Sequence record: MT133560.1
Strand: one strand, 5' to 3'
Length of the DNA: 64,000 nt
Every line of letters begins with the position of its first letter. Position 1 is the stretch's first letter. The position numbers and the translations under genes are program-made. The notes under the pieces were generated by a model that made no database searches, was not told the DNA's origin, and saw only the letters and a list, made by a program, of their open reading frames with translations. Positions 12,025-60,275 of the stretch are shown here, in pieces.

Positions 12025-12393
12025 GTGATGCAATGTTTAACACACGTAATGAAGTTAGTGGCCGTATTAAGTACGTTGTTATACGTATCAAACCCACTAG
12101 CTGCATCGTTGGTAGTTGACGAGAATTACTGTAATGGTGTTGCACTTATAGCACATGCCACAGCAGAAGCACGTCAGCGTAAAACACCCATTTTACAATG
12201 GGAAGAAAACCTACGATCCCTAAAAGGGTACGGCGTGAAGAACAAAGATAACGTTCTTTACAATGTTCTCCCAGCAGCAATTAAAGAGGTGCACGTTGTG
12301 TATTCACGTAGACAAAGCCCACGTGATGCATACGTTACATCATTTAAAACCTGTATGGATAACAACTACGGTAAAGCTGTGGTTGTAAAATAA
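12025..12393 (+). CDS. secreted two-cysteine protein (dispersed member of the 25.2-28.1 kb family)
   Basis: Signal-like MKLVAVLSTLLYVSNPLAA; mature part has two Cys, near each end. Confidence 0.75.
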   Translation: MMQCLTHVMKLVAVLSTLLYVSNPLAASLVVDENYCNGVALIAHATAEARQRKTPILQWEENLRSLKGYGVKNKDNVLYNVLPAAIKEVHVVYSRRQSPRDAYVTSFKTCMDNNYGKAVVVK

Positions 12394-12428: not shown

Positions 12429-12746
12429 ATGAGAATCTGTGGGTTGCAAATGTATAAAGTATTTGTTATATCAATGATAACACTAACGGCTATATCAACA
12501 TGTGTAACTTTCATTATTAATATAAAAAATCATTATATTCACTGGATGGGTGTTTATAAGGTTAGATATGTATTAGATAAAATGCCCAATGGCATAAGTT
12601 ATTTTTTCTATCAAAATGCTGTCCAAGACATTATAAATAAAGAATCATCTAAAATAACAAATCAACATATTTTTACATCTTTTATTTACGATATCAACTC
12701 ATTGATTATATTAAAATGTAATAATAGGGAAACAGCAAATGAATGA
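12429..12746 (+). CDS. single-pass membrane protein
   Basis: Hydrophobic VFVISMITLTAISTCVTFIINI. Confidence 0.7.
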   Translation: MRICGLQMYKVFVISMITLTAISTCVTFIINIKNHYIHWMGVYKVRYVLDKMPNGISYFFYQNAVQDIINKESSKITNQHIFTSFIYDINSLIILKCNNRETANE

Positions 12747-13029
12747 TATCATGACAGTAATTATAGGTATTTTGTTTCTGATTATAATGATGGCTTTAAT
12801 TAACTGGGGTTATTATGCCATCAAACACACGATAAAGTGTAACAGGCTTTATAAAGAAGCACTATCAATTATTGACAATATGAGTGATGGTTTATCTGAA
12901 TACCAGTATACAGTAGCTATTGGACGTTTACGTAAAAAGGCATACTCTATCGACCATTTAACTGCTGTTAAAATGTTTGAAGCATTAGACTTAGTTATTA
13001 AAGATAAGTCAAGAAAGAAAAATAAATAA
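12739..13029 (+). CDS. single-pass membrane protein
   Basis: IMTVIIGILFLIIMMALINWGYY. Confidence 0.8.
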   Translation: MNDIMTVIIGILFLIIMMALINWGYYAIKHTIKCNRLYKEALSIIDNMSDGLSEYQYTVAIGRLRKKAYSIDHLTAVKMFEALDLVIKDKSRKKNK

Positions 13030-24151: not shown

Positions 24152-24808
24152 ATGCTAATGAATGAAATTATCGATATTCTAGAAGGAGGGAAAGAGAATA
24201 TTCTCTTAACTAACCATCTAGGTAATGGCAAATATTCCAATGCGGGTAATGCAATGGCTGCATCATATGCCATTGCGGCACATACTGCTGTTGGTCAATT
24301 GCGAGATGGTTCAGGAAAACCTTACTGGCATCATTTATTACAAGTAGCTGAGATGGCGCAATTATTCGACCTATCTCACGCTGCTTATAAAGCAGCATGG
24401 TTACATGATGTAATTGAGGATACTGCTGTAACTGCTTCTGATCTAACTAAACTATTCTCAATCCCTGTTGTTAATTTAGTAACTGAACTAACAAATGTAA
24501 CTTACAAAGGTAATCGTAAAACTAGGATTAGTTTACAACATGAAAGACTTTCTCGCATTTCATGGAGTGGTCAATCTCTTAAGTTACTAGATTCCATTTC
24601 AAACATGTGGTCGATTGTTAATGATAAGCCTGATTTTGCTGAACTGTATCTGACTGAGAAAGCTCAACTAATCAGTAAGTTAAATAATTGTCACCCCGCT
24701 ATTAAAGATCTGGCTATATCTGTTCTCTATGGCAGGTGTACTATGGTTGGTGGGGATGCACTAAAAGAATATAATAAACTATTTTCTGATAATGAAATTG
24801 TATGTTAA
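24152..24808 (+). CDS. HD-domain hydrolase, RelA/SpoT-hydrolase (Mesh1/SAH)-like
   Basis: HTAVGQLRDGSGKPYWHH, AAWLHDVIEDT, V.LV.ELT, LKLLDSISN. Confidence 0.85.
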   Translation: MLMNEIIDILEGGKENILLTNHLGNGKYSNAGNAMAASYAIAAHTAVGQLRDGSGKPYWHHLLQVAEMAQLFDLSHAAYKAAWLHDVIEDTAVTASDLTKLFSIPVVNLVTELTNVTYKGNRKTRISLQHERLSRISWSGQSLKLLDSISNMWSIVNDKPDFAELYLTEKAQLISKLNNCHPAIKDLAISVLYGRCTMVGGDALKEYNKLFSDNEIVC

Positions 24809-24826
24809 AATAATTACTTAATATAC

Positions 24827-24900
24827 ACCCTCCCTTCGGGGAGGGTTTTATTTATCTTTTTTTTTGTATTTAAACTATTTAAAAAGCTATATTACAAATA
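24827..24900 (+). promoter_or_regulatory. terminator + early promoter cassette (class B)
   Basis: ACCCTCCC-TTCG-GGGAGGGT 24827-24846; TATATTAC 24888-24895. Confidence 0.85.
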
Positions 24901-24928
24901 TGAATTTAATAACCAAGAGGGCAATACA

Positions 24929-25192
24929 ATGACTGAACGTTTGAAATCCGTATGGTGCGCTTGCAGCTTACTGCGTGAACGCTGGAGACACATCCAAGAC
25001 ATTGCTGTCGGGGATGAACATCATGTCATAGTAAAAAACGATATGCTGATGGTGTTTCGTGGTCAAGTACCGGTAGGTAGCATGTACCGGGGTGACAGTG
25101 ACCCACTCATCTACGAGGGTGGTGCACTGGAAGAATTTACTAAAGTTGTATTGGATTTAGAATTCAATACTCGTGGTGAAACCAATAGTTAA
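24929..25192 (+). CDS. hypothetical early protein
   Basis: GAGGG RBS, first ORF after early promoter. Confidence 0.8.
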   Translation: MTERLKSVWCACSLLRERWRHIQDIAVGDEHHVIVKNDMLMVFRGQVPVGSMYRGDSDPLIYEGGALEEFTKVVLDLEFNTRGETNS

Positions 25193-25218
25193 TAAAATTA
25201 ATTTTGAGGTAATTCATT

Positions 25219-25626
25219 ATGAAATATGTAATTGTATTTATGTTGTCTATTGTAACTATCACTGCTAACTCGGCTGTCATGTACACTAATCGTGATTCAT
25301 GCATCGAGTTTGTAAAACAGGCAGATGAATTGTTTGTAAAAGGTGCATCTGTAACTGAAGTGCAAATGAAGACTTATGAAAGGATTCATTATATCCTTAA
25401 TAACACTAAAGATCTAAAGACCAACCAGTCTAAAGTTGAAGAACTCACTGGTCTATTTTACCTATGGTCTAAGGTAGATAAAATGGCAATTGAGGCAAGT
25501 TTGCCACGTGCAACAAATGCTGCTAAAGTCTATAAGACCACTCCTGAGAAATTCATCATTGATGGTTATTTCCAGCGTTGTGTAGCGGCAGGTGCGTTTG
25601 AAGCAAAACCACTTACTCTAAAATAA
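25219..25626 (+). CDS. secreted two-cysteine protein
   Basis: Sec signal MKYVIVFMLSIVTITANSA; only Cys in RDSC and FQRC. Confidence 0.85.
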   Translation: MKYVIVFMLSIVTITANSAVMYTNRDSCIEFVKQADELFVKGASVTEVQMKTYERIHYILNNTKDLKTNQSKVEELTGLFYLWSKVDKMAIEASLPRATNAAKVYKTTPEKFIIDGYFQRCVAAGAFEAKPLTLK

Positions 25627-25638
25627 TGGAGGTACAAC

Positions 25639-25998
25639 ATGCTTAAGAATTGGCTATTATTCCTTTTCCTGCCAATCCTGTCCATTGCATGTCAGCCTGC
25701 CCACGCTGTAGAAGTGGGTATTACTAAGAAATCATGTAATGTGGCAGTAAATCTTTCACAAAAAGCAACTGAGCTTTATGATAAGAACCTATCCCAATTT
25801 GAGATAATGATGCAGTTAGATATGATCTCTCGTAAGGATATGGATGACTTAGAGTTCTATGCAGGTACCGTATATGCTAAATTAAACTTAGTTGATATTC
25901 GCGTAAATAAACGAAAAGGATTTACCAATGGAGCTATTCTAGATAGGCTAGCTGAAAACTGTGTTGAAGCAATTGGTACTAAATTTAACTTGGAGTAG
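25639..25998 (+). CDS. secreted two-cysteine protein
   Basis: Signal ending PAHA; KKSC ... ENCVEAIGTKF. Confidence 0.85.
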   Translation: MLKNWLLFLFLPILSIACQPAHAVEVGITKKSCNVAVNLSQKATELYDKNLSQFEIMMQLDMISRKDMDDLEFYAGTVYAKLNLVDIRVNKRKGFTNGAILDRLAENCVEAIGTKFNLE

Positions 25999-26001
25999 AA
26001 T

Positions 26002-26796
26002 ATGGTTAGTATTTATATTGTCATTATACTCATGGCTATGCTAGCTGCATTGACATGTGGTAATTTGGTAGATAGCTGGGTAAGGCCAGCTATTCTAAAG
26101 TGGTTAAATGATGATGTCGCTATTCATTTCACCAATGCTACCTGGATGGTTGGGGGGATCCCTAATAGTGTTCCAATGCAACTAGGTAAAGCTGTTTGGT
26201 TACCCAAATACGTGGGTGACGGAATACGTCTTTATATCACGGCTGATGAAATAAAATTTGGATGGAATGGTAAAGAAAAAGATGCTTTAGCACGAGCCAT
26301 TGTTGAAGTTATCTTTATTGGTAAAAATCCAAATAGTAAACTTCTTGAAGTAAGTATTAAACCTATTTGGTTATACCCTTCTATCCAAAAAGAAAGTTTC
26401 TATTTAATGTTTGATTGGGAAAAGCTTTATACAAAAAATGAAGAGATGCGTATTTGTTGGAAGACAATACGTCACACTTTTTTCTATGGATTCCTAGGTT
26501 TGCTATTTGGCGGTAGTGCCAATGCAGATAACCTTGTATTAACTGAACGTGGATGTGACCAATATGAAGCAATGGTGAGAACTATTGCATCTAAAGCTTA
26601 TATTGGATTAGATCCAGTTATGGGTAGGGAATTCATTATTAATGATCCTGATATGTTAAATGCCCGTGAGAAAGCACAACGTAATACCCGTATCATTATC
26701 GATATGGTGGAAACTGGACAAGAACCCAAAGACATTGCATTATGGATGAATACTCAATGTAAACAAGAAGCAGTGTCAAATTTAATCAAACAGTAA
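26002..26796 (+). CDS. membrane protein fused to a secreted two-cysteine module (possible internal start 26446)
   Basis: N-terminal TM; internal signal-like RHTFFYGFLGLLFGGSANA followed by ERGC...TQC. Confidence 0.75.
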   Translation: MVSIYIVIILMAMLAALTCGNLVDSWVRPAILKWLNDDVAIHFTNATWMVGGIPNSVPMQLGKAVWLPKYVGDGIRLYITADEIKFGWNGKEKDALARAIVEVIFIGKNPNSKLLEVSIKPIWLYPSIQKESFYLMFDWEKLYTKNEEMRICWKTIRHTFFYGFLGLLFGGSANADNLVLTERGCDQYEAMVRTIASKAYIGLDPVMGREFIINDPDMLNAREKAQRNTRIIIDMVETGQEPKDIALWMNTQCKQEAVSNLIKQ

Positions 26797-26809
26797 AAAA
26801 GGCATAGAT

Positions 26810-27193
26810 ATGAAAAGAAATTTTGAAGATGATCACGTGGTAATGGCAGTGGAAGTATATGAGAAACTGAAAGAAGCTGCTGCTTATTCATTACACTCTT
26901 CTGAAATTAGTAAGATCGAACGACATATGCGTAAGTTTAATCGTGTTCAACGCGATAAACATATTGAAAATATGCATATGGAAATGCTTGAGAAACGCGA
27001 GGCTATTAGAAAAGCAAAATCTTTCTTTTCTCAAAATGCCGGTAAAATTGGTTGCGTAGTAGATAGGCTTGTCAAAGTATGTGAAGTGTATAAAATGGAT
27101 AAGTCTATGGTGGTTGTTGAGTTTCTCCAACATAAATCTAAAATTAAAGTTCCAGTAAATCCTGAAAAAATTACTATTCTTACCATTAAATAA
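26810..27193 (+). CDS. hypothetical protein, paralog of 1493..2095
   Basis: By-eye alignment over about 85 aa. Confidence 0.8.
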   Translation: MKRNFEDDHVVMAVEVYEKLKEAAAYSLHSSEISKIERHMRKFNRVQRDKHIENMHMEMLEKREAIRKAKSFFSQNAGKIGCVVDRLVKVCEVYKMDKSMVVVEFLQHKSKIKVPVNPEKITILTIK

Positions 27194-27210
27194 ATGAAGA
27201 AGGATTTAAA

Positions 27211-27666
27211 ATGAAAAATGTAATTGCAGCAGCTTTCGCTGGTCTCATTGCCATTACCGGTATCATGTTCAATACCGCAATGGCTGAAATCAAGATTGGT
27301 AAAAAAGATGCTCAACTCACTGTGCAGTCGTGTGCAATGGTTGAAACCATTACTAAACAAGCTGTATTTCGAATGAGTGAAGGTCATAGCGCAGATGAAG
27401 TTGGTGTGCTTATGCTCAACAACTCTGCTAAACTAAAAGATGAGTTGGATACCAATAATTGGATTGCGTTAACATTCGTATTCAATAGTCTTAATAAAAT
27501 CAATAATGACCTTAACAGTAAAGAGATCCATGATTATATCCGTAGTCAAGGTTACAATGTGACTACTCCTAATCTGGCAGCTTTTATCAGCGGGTATTAT
27601 GGCAATTACTGCATGAAGCATATTGGTGAGAAATTCACTCACATGGTAATTGTTGAACTCATTTAA
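27211..27666 (+). CDS. secreted two-cysteine protein
   Basis: Signal ending TAMA; TVQSC ... NYCMKHIGEKF. Confidence 0.85.
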   Translation: MKNVIAAAFAGLIAITGIMFNTAMAEIKIGKKDAQLTVQSCAMVETITKQAVFRMSEGHSADEVGVLMLNNSAKLKDELDTNNWIALTFVFNSLNKINNDLNSKEIHDYIRSQGYNVTTPNLAAFISGYYGNYCMKHIGEKFTHMVIVELI

Positions 27667-27698
27667 TTCATATCGAATACTTTCAAAAGGAAAATAGG

Positions 27699-28076
27699 AT
27701 GAAATACGTCTTCTCGCTCATTATCACTATGGTAGCAATGTCGGTTAATGCACAACCCGTAACCGTGTCATCTTGCTACGTGCTGCACAGCTTGGCAAAG
27801 AATATGGTTCAATTCTACACTAATGGCGGTGAGCCATTGGAGATGTATGCAATACTGCAAGATGAACTATCCATTGCCATAGATAAAAACCAGAGTGATA
27901 AGGCACTCGCTATTAATATCGCATTGGATAATGTCGATGTAATATACCAAAATCTCACTGATCCCGCACTTAAGCTTTTGGCAAAGAGCGAGGGAAGTGA
28001 TCTTGGTGAGATGCTGACTGAAAAACTCAGTAATGGGTGTTTCAATATAGTCGGCGAGGAGTTGTATGATAACTAG
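27699..28076 (+). CDS. secreted two-cysteine protein
   Basis: Signal ending SVNA; TVSSC ... NGCFNIVGEEL. Confidence 0.85.
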   Translation: MKYVFSLIITMVAMSVNAQPVTVSSCYVLHSLAKNMVQFYTNGGEPLEMYAILQDELSIAIDKNQSDKALAINIALDNVDVIYQNLTDPALKLLAKSEGSDLGEMLTEKLSNGCFNIVGEELYDN

Positions 28077-28305
28077 AATCATCCTAATTGTTGCATGGGT
28101 ATGGGTAATCTCTCTTATGGGAATGATTACGTATGTTCTTTATGATACGTATCAATTTCGTAAGAAATTAGAAATGCCTGTTGTAGAATGGGAAGATAAG
28201 GCGAAGGACACTCCTGTTAAGAAGTGTCCAGATGAAGTATTATTCGCTGAAGACCCAAAGGATGGCAAACTCAAAATGGGATGCCCTGAGAGTTATAAGA
28301 AATAA
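28066..28305 (+). CDS. single-pass membrane protein with Cys pair
   Basis: IILIVAWVWVISLMGMITYVLY; KKCP...MGCP. Confidence 0.75.
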   Translation: MITRIILIVAWVWVISLMGMITYVLYDTYQFRKKLEMPVVEWEDKAKDTPVKKCPDEVLFAEDPKDGKLKMGCPESYKK

Positions 28306-28307
28306 TT

Positions 28308-28327
28308 AGAGGACCTTCGGGTCCTCT
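28308..28327 (+). terminator. intrinsic terminator
   Basis: AGAGGACC-TTCG-GGTCCTCT TTTT. Confidence 0.85.
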
Positions 28328-28387
28328 TTTTAACCGACTGGACGGTTAAAACTAGGTGGGATAAATTAAACTATTTGAGGAAATCTA

Positions 28388-28495
28388 ATGCAACTTAGTA
28401 ATGAACTTTTCTATGTGGGTATGGTAGCTGTATCAATGTCAATCGGTATGCTATTTAGCTATATTTATCACACTCATAAGAAAAAATATAAATAA
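28388..28495 (+). CDS. 35-aa membrane microprotein
   Basis: GAGG RBS; [35 protein letters not shown]. Confidence 0.6.
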
Positions 28496-28498
28496 AGT

Positions 28499-28560
28499 CA
28501 TAAACCCTCTCCCAAAGGAGAGGGCTTTTACATTAAATTTTTTTTGAAATCTATATTACA
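28499..28560 (+). promoter_or_regulatory. terminator + early promoter cassette (class A)
   Basis: CCCTCTCC-CAAA-GGAGAGGG 28505-28524; TATATTAC 28552-28559. Confidence 0.9.
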
Positions 28561-59861: not shown

Positions 59862-60275
59862 CTACATTATATCTCGTGTACCATCATTCATTTCAACAAC
59901 AGTGACTTTATCACCAACCTTTGGTTTTTCATTGGTAACTGTTTGAACCATGTACTGCTTGCCATCTGTATTAACAATCAGTTTACATTGAAATGTTTCA
60001 GTAGCACTAACATTATTACCGACTGCGCCGCCTGCGGCACCACCGATTAAACCACCTACCCAACCTCCAGATTTACCAAAGATTGCTCGACCTAATACAG
60101 CGCCTGCGGTGGCTCCAACCGCACCTCCAACAGTAGTGCCGACAACACTACTATCTTTAGCAACTAGCTGACATTCTGAATGTGCAATAATACCATCTGT
60201 AGTTGATTTTACTTCAGTTGCTGCAAATAGGACAGTGGACCACATTAAAACTATGAATGCGATAATCTTAATCAT
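59862..60275 (-). CDS. glycine-zipper 2TM (SlyB/YcfJ-like) envelope protein
   Basis: Signal peptide, GTTVGGAVGATAGAVLG...GGLIGGAAGGAVGN, C-terminal VGDKVTV; ATGA overlap with nrdB. Confidence 0.85.
   Translation of the reverse strand: MIKIIAFIVLMWSTVLFAATEVKSTTDGIIAHSECQLVAKDSSVVGTTVGGAVGATAGAVLGRAIFGKSGGWVGGLIGGAAGGAVGNNVSATETFQCKLIVNTDGKQYMVQTVTNEKPKVGDKVTVVEMNDGTRDIM

Follow-up and report, generated by a model that had tools for sequence, protein, structure and literature searches.

Why would a nucleus-forming phage spend an early promoter on a row of small proteins that look built for export? The question is raised by an operon, running from gp246.1 to gp253.1, in a 64,000-nucleotide stretch of sequence record MT133560.1 (the window, in whose coordinates positions are given unless another sequence is named). 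Over 24800-28400, identity is 100% with Pseudomonas phage fnug and 99.9% with phiKZ, and the region matches 47 phiKZ-species genomes; judged by this identity, the window is that of a phage of the phiKZ species. A first-pass annotation, made from the letters alone, had described five open reading frames (ORFs) of the operon as a tandem array of divergent, secreted two-cysteine paralogs forming an expanded, diversifying family. These ORFs lie where it had placed them and correspond to PHIKZ247, 248, 249, 251 and 252 (products gp247 to gp252), with the non-member gp250 sitting among them. Common ancestry is proven, on sequence profiles, for gp248, gp251 and gp252 only. The best explanation for the array, which we put forward tentatively, is that it encodes exported, disulfide-stapled proteins that would protect the envelope of the infected cell.

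The operon and its flanking signals comprise the following features:

24827..24846, + strand: intrinsic terminator T110, a stem-loop with a T-run, closing the upstream gp244-246 unit
24888..24903, + strand: early (virion RNA polymerase) promoter TATATTAC with transcription start site P122, from motif search and published start site
24929..25192, + strand: gp246.1, first ORF of the operon, lacking a hydrophobic N-terminus and not a family member
25219..25626, + strand: gp247, predicted signal peptide and Cys28/Cys121, basic with an isoelectric point (pI) of 8.8
25639..25998, + strand: gp248, short-type member, probable lipoprotein
26002..26796, + strand: gp249, two-part protein with a C-terminal two-Cys module (gp249C), the predicted mature part at about 26527-26793
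26810..27193, + strand: gp250, interleaved non-member, lacking a hydrophobic N-terminus and any family match
27211..27666, + strand: gp251, long-type member
27699..28076, + strand: gp252, strongly acidic member (pI 4.2, net charge -10)
28066..28305, + strand: gp253, co-transcribed 79-residue membrane protein outside the family, with two Cys at its C-terminus
28308..28327, + strand: terminator T111, a stem-loop, the first terminator of the operon
28388-28495, + strand: gp253.1, last ORF of the operon, before the second terminator
28505..28524, + strand: terminator T112, a stem-loop 3' of gp253.1, the second terminator of the operon

Is this array transcribed as an early unit? The operon, its early promoter and its terminators are shown by the sequence taken together with published data. 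The promoter motif claimed at 24888 is indeed present, TATATTAC occupying 24888-24895, and a published early transcription start site (TSS) lies 8 nt downstream. This site, P122, maps to phiKZ 240373 (window 24903), was classed as an 'early promoter' by ONT-cappable-seq, and was also seen by dRNA-seq (Wicke et al. 2021). A T-rich stretch precedes the motif, after the terminator at 24827-24846, and the operon genes are tightly packed. Published 3' ends correspond to all three terminators: phiKZ 240325 (about window 24855) to T110, 243801 (about 28331) to T111 and 243999 (about 28529) to T112. In the ONT-cappable-seq supplement, transcription units TU179 and TU180 span gp246.1 to gp253 (and gp253.1). 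An AT-rich motif, a mapped TSS and flanking intrinsic terminators, the features looked for in an early transcription unit, were thus all found. The terminator and promoter motif are also kept, directly upstream of gp247, in the Logan contig L007, a relative that carries the whole array at roughly 85% protein identity (60-96% across the operon genes). Since gp246.1 is missing there (compared stretch L007 1861-1994), so that the promoter directly precedes gp247, this first ORF is either dispensable or a recent insertion. Two further published promoters lie inside the operon, namely the late promoter P123 (phiKZ 243202, window about 27732), about 33 nt inside the 5' end of gp252, and the middle promoter P124 (phiKZ 243620, window about 28150), inside gp253, which implies that the 3' end of the operon is transcribed later as well. 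The last 11 nt of gp252 are shared with the start of gp253, and gp253 is the most conserved gene of the operon, with 96% identity in L007.

Are the products of the array made for export? The heuristic used for signal peptides is a loose one, over-calling membrane anchors and some soluble proteins, and flagged sequences were then read individually. It flagged 20 of the 116 window genes, and on reading these were mostly membrane anchors or false positives; canonical cleavable signal peptides were left in about 7 of the 116, these being the candidates and one Gly-rich protein. As cleavable signal peptides are so rare in the window, it is unlikely by chance that four or five of the roughly seven should fall within six adjacent genes (P about 0.008, corrected for window position). 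All five candidates show a hydrophobic segment and a small-x-small site after it, in keeping with the A-x-A-like signal ends first proposed; read directly from the sequence, the sites (marked by a slash) are ANS/A in gp247, AHA/V in gp248, AMA/E in gp251, VNA/Q in gp252 and, internally, ANA/D after residue 175 of gp249. The predicted mature chains measure 87-126 residues (10-14 kDa), close to the estimate of about 90-125.

Each candidate carries one Cys near either end, at precursor positions 28/121 in gp247, 33/108 in gp248, 41/134 in gp251, 26/114 in gp252 and 185/253 in the C-terminal module of gp249. The count of exactly two that had been claimed does not hold throughout, however, as gp248 has a third Cys in its signal sequence (Cys18) and the whole of gp249 has four, including Cys19 and Cys152. 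The first Cys (Cys1) lies 8-16 residues from the predicted mature N-terminus and the second (Cys2) 73-93 residues further on. The C-x4-G motif noticed around Cys2 is real, the Gly five residues after Cys2 being nearly invariant across 23 family members. A signal-like N-terminus, the Cys spacing and this Gly occur together in gp248, gp251, gp252 and all 23 aligned members; gp247, gp249C and PHIKZ229 (a protein encoded elsewhere in the window, at 12028..12393) have the signal peptide and the Cys spacing, but the Gly is displaced or lacking. The two-Cys module does not occur in gp250, gp246.1 or the N-terminal half of gp249. Taken together, the signal-peptide features, the invariance of the Cys residues and the AlphaFold model described below are consistent with Sec export and a disulfide.

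Do these proteins form one family? Pairwise Smith-Waterman comparison with shuffles detected gp251-gp252 alone (z 7.4) and was too weak for the other pairs, whereas profiles reached further. Among 170 window ORFs, the three best matches to a profile of the mature region of gp248 orthologues from outside phiKZ were gp248 (8e-25), gp252 (6e-4) and gp251 (2e-3), followed by one at 0.33, and a profile of PS119XW gp301 and Psa21 gp333 alone found gp251 at 9e-7. Orthologues of gp248 are present in PhiPA3, Phabio, PS119XW, Psa21 and 201phi2-1. Word-indexed protein searches added few members, and an exhaustive HMMER search of 1.84 billion protein representatives was needed; it returned 18 proteins at E<=0.001, from Pseudomonas chimalliviruses and jumbo-sized metagenomic contigs. 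Eleven new members were retrieved (104-152 residues), all with both Cys and ten with a signal peptide, the remaining one (P0073) being N-terminally truncated. The alignment built from the members (A4, 23 sequences) has both Cys invariant and separates two subtypes: a short gp248 type with a Cys spacing of 73-75, and a long gp251 type, lengthened by an insertion, with a spacing of 87-93. The A4 profile finds gp251 at 1e-33, gp248 at 6e-27 and gp252 at 7e-26. The word paralogs is therefore justified for these three, but kinship is not demonstrated for gp247, gp249C and PHIKZ229.

For these last three proteins the evidence is graded. Against the A4 profile, gp247 scored 0.026, in register, and gp249 scored 0.054, out of register, while PHIKZ229 gave no match. 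When compared at full length by hhalign, gp247 aligned with the family over 123 columns, its two Cys in register, at a probability of 75-86%, whereas signal-peptide and membrane-anchor controls reached at most 19%; restricted to its mature part, it gave P=0.011 and a score of 19.1, equal to the top negative controls. For gp249C and PHIKZ229, only short local matches around Cys1 were obtained against the family, not above controls. It could then be argued that the six are not one family, and that gp247, gp249C and PHIKZ229 came to resemble gp248, gp251 and gp252 by convergence. Small periplasmic proteins often combine a signal peptide with two Cys, further window proteins that have hydrophobic N-termini also bear a Cys towards either end, the gp247 model is of low confidence, and the profile results just given for mature gp247, for gp249C and for PHIKZ229 are what such convergence would produce. 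We nevertheless regard it as rather unlikely, given that full-length gp247 stands above the signal-peptide controls from end to end with both Cys in register, that a gp247-type gene adjoins family members in PS119XW also (its orthologue being PS119XW gp302), and that predicted structures of the gp247 and PHIKZ229 orthologues and of a 264-residue protein match the gp248 model with Foldseek probabilities of 0.90 to 1.00. On the profile and structural comparisons, gp247 is probably a divergent family member, and what links gp249C and PHIKZ229 to the family is only their architecture and the Foldseek matches of predicted structures. Family identity, understood as early production, a signal sequence, a single disulfide and a helical fold, is well supported for three members and moderately so for the remaining three.

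None of the 23 members matched Pfam, PADLOC or the PDB sequence profiles (in Pfam no saposin family appeared at E<=1), and PHROGs and Rfam gave nothing informative, PHROGs splitting the six phiKZ proteins into six separate groups. Earlier groupings do exist in part: pVOG VOG9823 already links gp248 and gp251 only, and phrog_15284 and GenBank notes group gp248 with its orthologues (PhiPA3 gp303 and 201phi2-1 gp367 in GenBank). Unlike the family defined here, however, these orthologue groupings come with no name, function, architecture or family definition, and no prior description of the family was found in the literature, as the first-pass annotation had supposed.

What fold would the exported part adopt? 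An AlphaFold2 model of gp248, made from a six-sequence alignment, has a mean predicted local distance difference test score (pLDDT) of 80.5, with 85-93 over most of the mature domain, and agrees with the helical character that had been guessed from sequence. Helices are predicted at 30-48, 53-65, 71-82/84-92 and 97-110, and the only two strands, at 25-27 and 115-117, flank helix 1 and the last helix. Cys33 lies near the start of helix 1 (residue 30) and Cys108 near the end of the last helix (residue 110). As the model has only these two strands, they presumably pair, which would place Cys33 next to Cys108; it is from this placement of strands and helices that we infer the proximity of the two Cys.

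Searched against BFVD, the gp248 model recovered the PhiPA3, Psa21 and 201phi2-1 orthologues at 1e-7 to 9e-5 and also long-type or extra members in 201phi2-1, Phabio and Psa21. Beyond these, it matched the PS119XW orthologue of PHIKZ229 (A0A5C1K8Y4; probability 1.00, template modelling (TM) score 0.68, 119 columns), the gp247-type PS119XW gp302 (probability 0.90, TM 0.51), both confirmed by accession, and the 264-residue entry A0A494WC04 (probability 0.99, TM 0.59, 106 columns), which is identified as gp249 by length alone. Likewise the 151-residue entry A0A494W8Q1 was taken as gp251 by length alone, the accession being unconfirmed. An AlphaFold2 model of gp247, although of low confidence (pLDDT 60), places five helices as in gp248, and its best non-self BFVD matches are family members.

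Among PDB structures, the seven that the gp248 model matched best included four saposins, with saposin A at a target-normalised TM of 0.70-0.73, a root-mean-square deviation of 2.8-2.9 Å over about 81 columns and E-values of 0.4-1.3. Saposins (saposin A/C, Na-SLP-1) are eukaryotic lysosomal or secreted lipid-binding proteins, and share with the gp248 model the order of the helices and the stapling, predicted for gp248, of the first helix to the last, but they have three disulfides (six conserved Cys) where one would be present here (two Cys in the mature domain). The resemblance is, at the level of predicted models, the best structural lead. It also invites a reading in which the proteins are saposin-like lipid binders, their bundles opening to bind phospholipid, lipopolysaccharide or the acyl chains of lipoproteins and so remodelling or stabilising the envelope. 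The match of the model covers essentially the whole saposin chain, and the predicted N-to-C helix staple would be the equivalent of the outermost saposin disulfide. We hold this reading unlikely, as the E-values are high, only one of the three canonical disulfides would be represented, no saposin match appeared in Pfam or the PDB sequence profiles, no published precedent was found for periplasmic phage saposins, and the contrasting charges of the paralogues suit protein partners better than one common lipid. A bolder version, in which nucleus-forming jumbo phages possess a saposin-fold, disulfide-stapled periplasmic arm, soluble, lipid-anchored or (in gp249) joined to a membrane-spanning cytoplasmic domain, that binds envelope lipids or lipid-linked molecules and reprogrammes the envelope early in infection, appears improbable; if true, no saposin-like system for handling lipids would have been described in a bacterial virus before.

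How would the exported parts be held in the envelope? In gp248, Cys18 ends the hydrophobic region in a lipobox-like L-S-I-A-C (pattern used: [LVI][ASTVI][GAS]C where the hydrophobic region ends). This Cys is kept in seven of the eight full-length short-type members of alignment A4, in six of them with a canonical small residue before it. The context is F-V-G-C in PhiPA3 and Phabio and F-T-G-C in PS119XW and P0081, and in all three contexts, that of gp248 included, Q-P follows the Cys; the short-type genes of Psa21 and L009 have the Cys in a non-canonical T-M-C. The UniRef label for gp248 is 'Lipoprotein'. From these sequence features, the gp248 type is probably lipid-anchored through the lipobox Cys.

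A different arrangement is suggested for gp249, which consists of an N-terminal hydrophobic segment, a domain of about 135 residues, a second hydrophobic segment, the ANA/D site and the two-Cys module. No charge precedes the first hydrophobic segment and basic residues follow it, while R/K/R/H precede the second and ANA/D follows. This distribution suggests an N-out protein anchored in the membrane, with a domain in the cytoplasm and its C-terminal module exported. A separate gene for gp249C starting at Met149 (ATG 26446) was considered and rejected, as no properly spaced ribosome-binding site precedes it, and gp249 is therefore probably one 264-residue protein. A 116-residue database entry was likewise set aside as evidence for a separate gp249C, its source being a contig of 550 nt. 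In L007, gp249 keeps its four Cys.

The sixth copy that had been proposed at 12025 is PHIKZ229:

12028..12393, + strand: PHIKZ229, two-Cys protein with a predicted signal peptide, Cys35/Cys109

Its true start is the ATG at 12028. The two-Cys architecture of this protein is sound, Cys35 and Cys109 being invariant in six orthologues of 39-55% identity, but its sequence link to the family is not above controls. Nor does it belong to the early programme, as the ONT-cappable-seq supplement lists PHIKZ229 as a monocistronic unit with a late promoter. In the alignment of the six orthologues (A7), the N-terminus before the hydrophobic core (window 12028-12050) is unusually well conserved, with T-H-V invariant; in phiKZ it reads M-Q-C-L-T-H-V, and such conservation is odd for the n-region of a signal peptide. 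PHIKZ230 and 230.1 (12429-13029, + strand; 105 and 96 residues) are small membrane proteins encoded directly after PHIKZ229, and the three genes appear, from their sequences, to form a small cluster directed to the envelope.

How old is the array, and is it diversifying? One copy is found at the syntenic locus in PhiPA3 and in Phabio; two copies, with a short type, an unrelated gene and a long type in that order, are found in Psa21 and in a 315-kb metagenomic contig; and PS119XW has three adjacent copies (short, long and gp247-type). With three certain and two probable copies, phiKZ has the largest array among the related phages examined, and in this sense the family is expanded, although homology is shown for three of its six proposed members. 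The distribution of copies indicates that the short and long pair is probably ancestral and that phiKZ expanded it. The gp248 orthologue lies downstream of the HD phosphohydrolase gene in PhiPA3 and PS119XW. A role for gp250 as a conserved partner was rejected, since the interleaved position in Psa21 and L009 is taken by a gene of no relation to it. As a separate observation, a multi-pass membrane protein of 90-92 residues is encoded near the short-type gene in PS119XW and Psa21 (L005 3600-3872 and L006 3224-3502). In PS119XW it comes directly before the short-type gene, at the place of gp246.1 in phiKZ, while in Psa21 it lies one gene further upstream, so that gene content just upstream of the short-type gene differs between lineages.

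The description of the family as diversifying is not supported by the substitution data. Between the window and L007, the ratio of nonsynonymous to synonymous substitution rates (dN/dS) is 0.09 for gp247, 0.03 for gp248, 0.10 for gp249 and 0.16 for gp252, values to be read with dS saturated or near-saturated for most operon genes; for gp251 the ratio was not computable (dN 0.118). The highest ratio of the operon belongs to the non-member gp250 (0.23), one of whose Cys positions is not conserved in L007, whereas every Cys of the five candidates keeps its position there, the lipobox Cys included. Across the 47 phiKZ-species genomes, the array genes are 99-100% identical. The genes for gp249, gp251 and gp252 are found in the phiKZ species only and are kept in 47 of 47 genomes, gp252 matching in two pieces in one of them. 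Low dN/dS together with this near-identity indicates that the paralogues are old and that each is under purifying selection.

What, then, would the proteins do? Published observations give some bearings. The homologue of gp248 in phage Churi was among 19 phage proteins detected 15 min post-infection, in two infection formats, and when 15 proteins including this homologue were overexpressed, growth inhibition was reported for gp335 alone, which speaks against overt toxicity of the homologue. The phiKZ orf184-304 region has been described as largely non-essential and enriched for host-interaction genes. A sequenced, viable phiKZ carries a transposon insertion in orf252, showing that this gene is dispensable for plaque formation.

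The protective role proposed at the outset would combine these elements as follows. The virion RNA polymerase would transcribe the gp246.1-gp253.1 operon from the first minutes of infection, and four or five of its products would carry Sec-type signal peptides when first made. Their exported parts would be bundles of 10-14 kDa with four to five helices, in which a single disulfide would join the first helix, near its start, to the last one, near its end, as does the outermost staple of the saposin-like topology. The short gp248 type would probably be lipid-anchored, by default at the inner face of the outer membrane. With pI values from 4.2 to 9.4 among the paralogues (4.2 to 8.8 within the array), a shared scaffold bearing very different surface charges suggests that the paralogues have different partners, and each would probably bind a different envelope target. 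Their most likely role would be to shield the envelope of the infected cell from secondary attack, either by blocking the entry machinery or wall-degrading enzymes of later phages or by masking surface structures, as Spackle and Llp do.

These two precedents are instructive. T4 Spackle (gp61.3) is a periplasmic superinfection-exclusion protein that blocks the tail lysozyme of a superinfecting phage (the lysozyme domain of T4 gp5). It is the closest match of the family in architecture and expression logic, being an early product with a cleaved signal peptide, a five-helix bundle and a disulfide from the first helix to a Cys near the C-terminus (Cys29-Cys81), but it is single-copy with 75 mature residues, whereas the present proteins are multi-copy with 87-126. 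T5 Llp, an outer-membrane lipoprotein made early, contains an intramolecular disulfide and acts from the periplasmic side to jam the receptor. The Llp/Cor superinfection-exclusion lipoproteins share with the gp248 type a lipobox-like Cys, a Cys pair and early production; unlike it, Llp is about 61 residues long and gives no sequence match, and the lipobox is not universal here but limited to the short subtype.

Several points weigh against the protective role or against steps on the way to it. No partner or phenotype is on record for the family proteins, and no experimental localisation or processing data were found in the literature. Spackle appeared neither among the PDB sequence-profile matches nor among the top 50 Foldseek PDB matches of gp248, so that the functional analogy is one of architecture only. 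The Foldseek E-values for saposins are weak, and small helical bundles match easily. As to anchoring, the short-type member P0078 lacks the lipobox Cys, and an A-x-A site lies 5-6 residues after the position of that Cys, which leaves processing by signal peptidase I as an alternative to lipidation. The module of gp249 may also be placed otherwise if its hydrophobic segments orient differently.

Two other functions were weighed against the same evidence. The proteins could inhibit periplasmic functions of the host, such as stress sensors, proteases and envelope defences, or the effectors of neighbouring cells, in the manner of immunity-protein arrays. Early expression, the export signals and the accessory status of the genes within a region rich in host-interaction genes would suit such inhibitors, as would divergent tandem paralogues of differing charge, which resemble periplasmic immunity-protein arrays. 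Set against this, PADLOC and Pfam gave no link to defence or immunity families and there is no partner on record, and we consider the idea distinctly unlikely. The other possibility is that the proteins regulate the timing of lysis, as antiholin- or sensor-like proteins in the manner of T4 RI, or act as partners of the phage's own wall-degrading enzymes. Small, exported helical proteins would not be out of place in a large lytic phage, PHIKZ229 is late, and a late promoter lies in the 5' end of gp252. This is very unlikely all the same, since an early promoter drives the array, no lysis-regulator fold was found among the top PDB matches, and the phiKZ lysis cassette consists of genes 141-144, far from the array, and is described without array genes. 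The array as a part of the lysis cassette was rejected on the last of these grounds.

Some observations concern neighbouring genes and the databases. Upstream of the array lies:

24152-24808, + strand: gp246, HD-domain phosphohydrolase

Its synteny with the array extends to PhiPA3 and PS119XW. It matches the HD_4 domain at E 7.5e-12, a fold of the RelA/SpoT-type hydrolases, and some records label it 'GTP pyrophosphokinase'; on this domain match, gp246 may be a phage alarmone hydrolase. At 59865-60275 (- strand), a 137-residue protein combines a textbook signal peptide and two Cys with a long Gly-rich central stretch that resembles a glycine zipper; its sequence makes it a probable further envelope protein, unrelated to the two-Cys family. 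Finally, many short fragments of these phiKZ proteins appear in databases under 'Klebsiella pneumoniae', as partial proteins from contigs of 200-700 nt, and are probably phiKZ-type DNA contaminating assemblies and not Klebsiella genes.

Work on chimalliviruses has so far been concerned with the cytoplasm, that is, with the early infection vesicle, the phage nucleus, protein import and the tubulin spindle, and a 2025 review of their biology makes no mention of periplasm, secretion or lipoproteins. Against this background, phiKZ devotes one of roughly 30 early promoters to an operon whose products seem mostly built for export, and the core pair of short and long types is conserved across Pseudomonas chimalliviruses and a jumbo-sized metagenomic contig. 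With 10-14 kDa, one predicted disulfide and a confident gp248 model, the family offers a compact structural target. The locus thus points to an unexplored, cell-envelope side of infection by nucleus-forming phages. If protection or remodelling of the envelope proves true, it would matter for superinfection, for phage competition in mixed populations and for how an infected cell presents itself to phages arriving later, and would be relevant to understanding the phiKZ-like phages used against P. aeruginosa.

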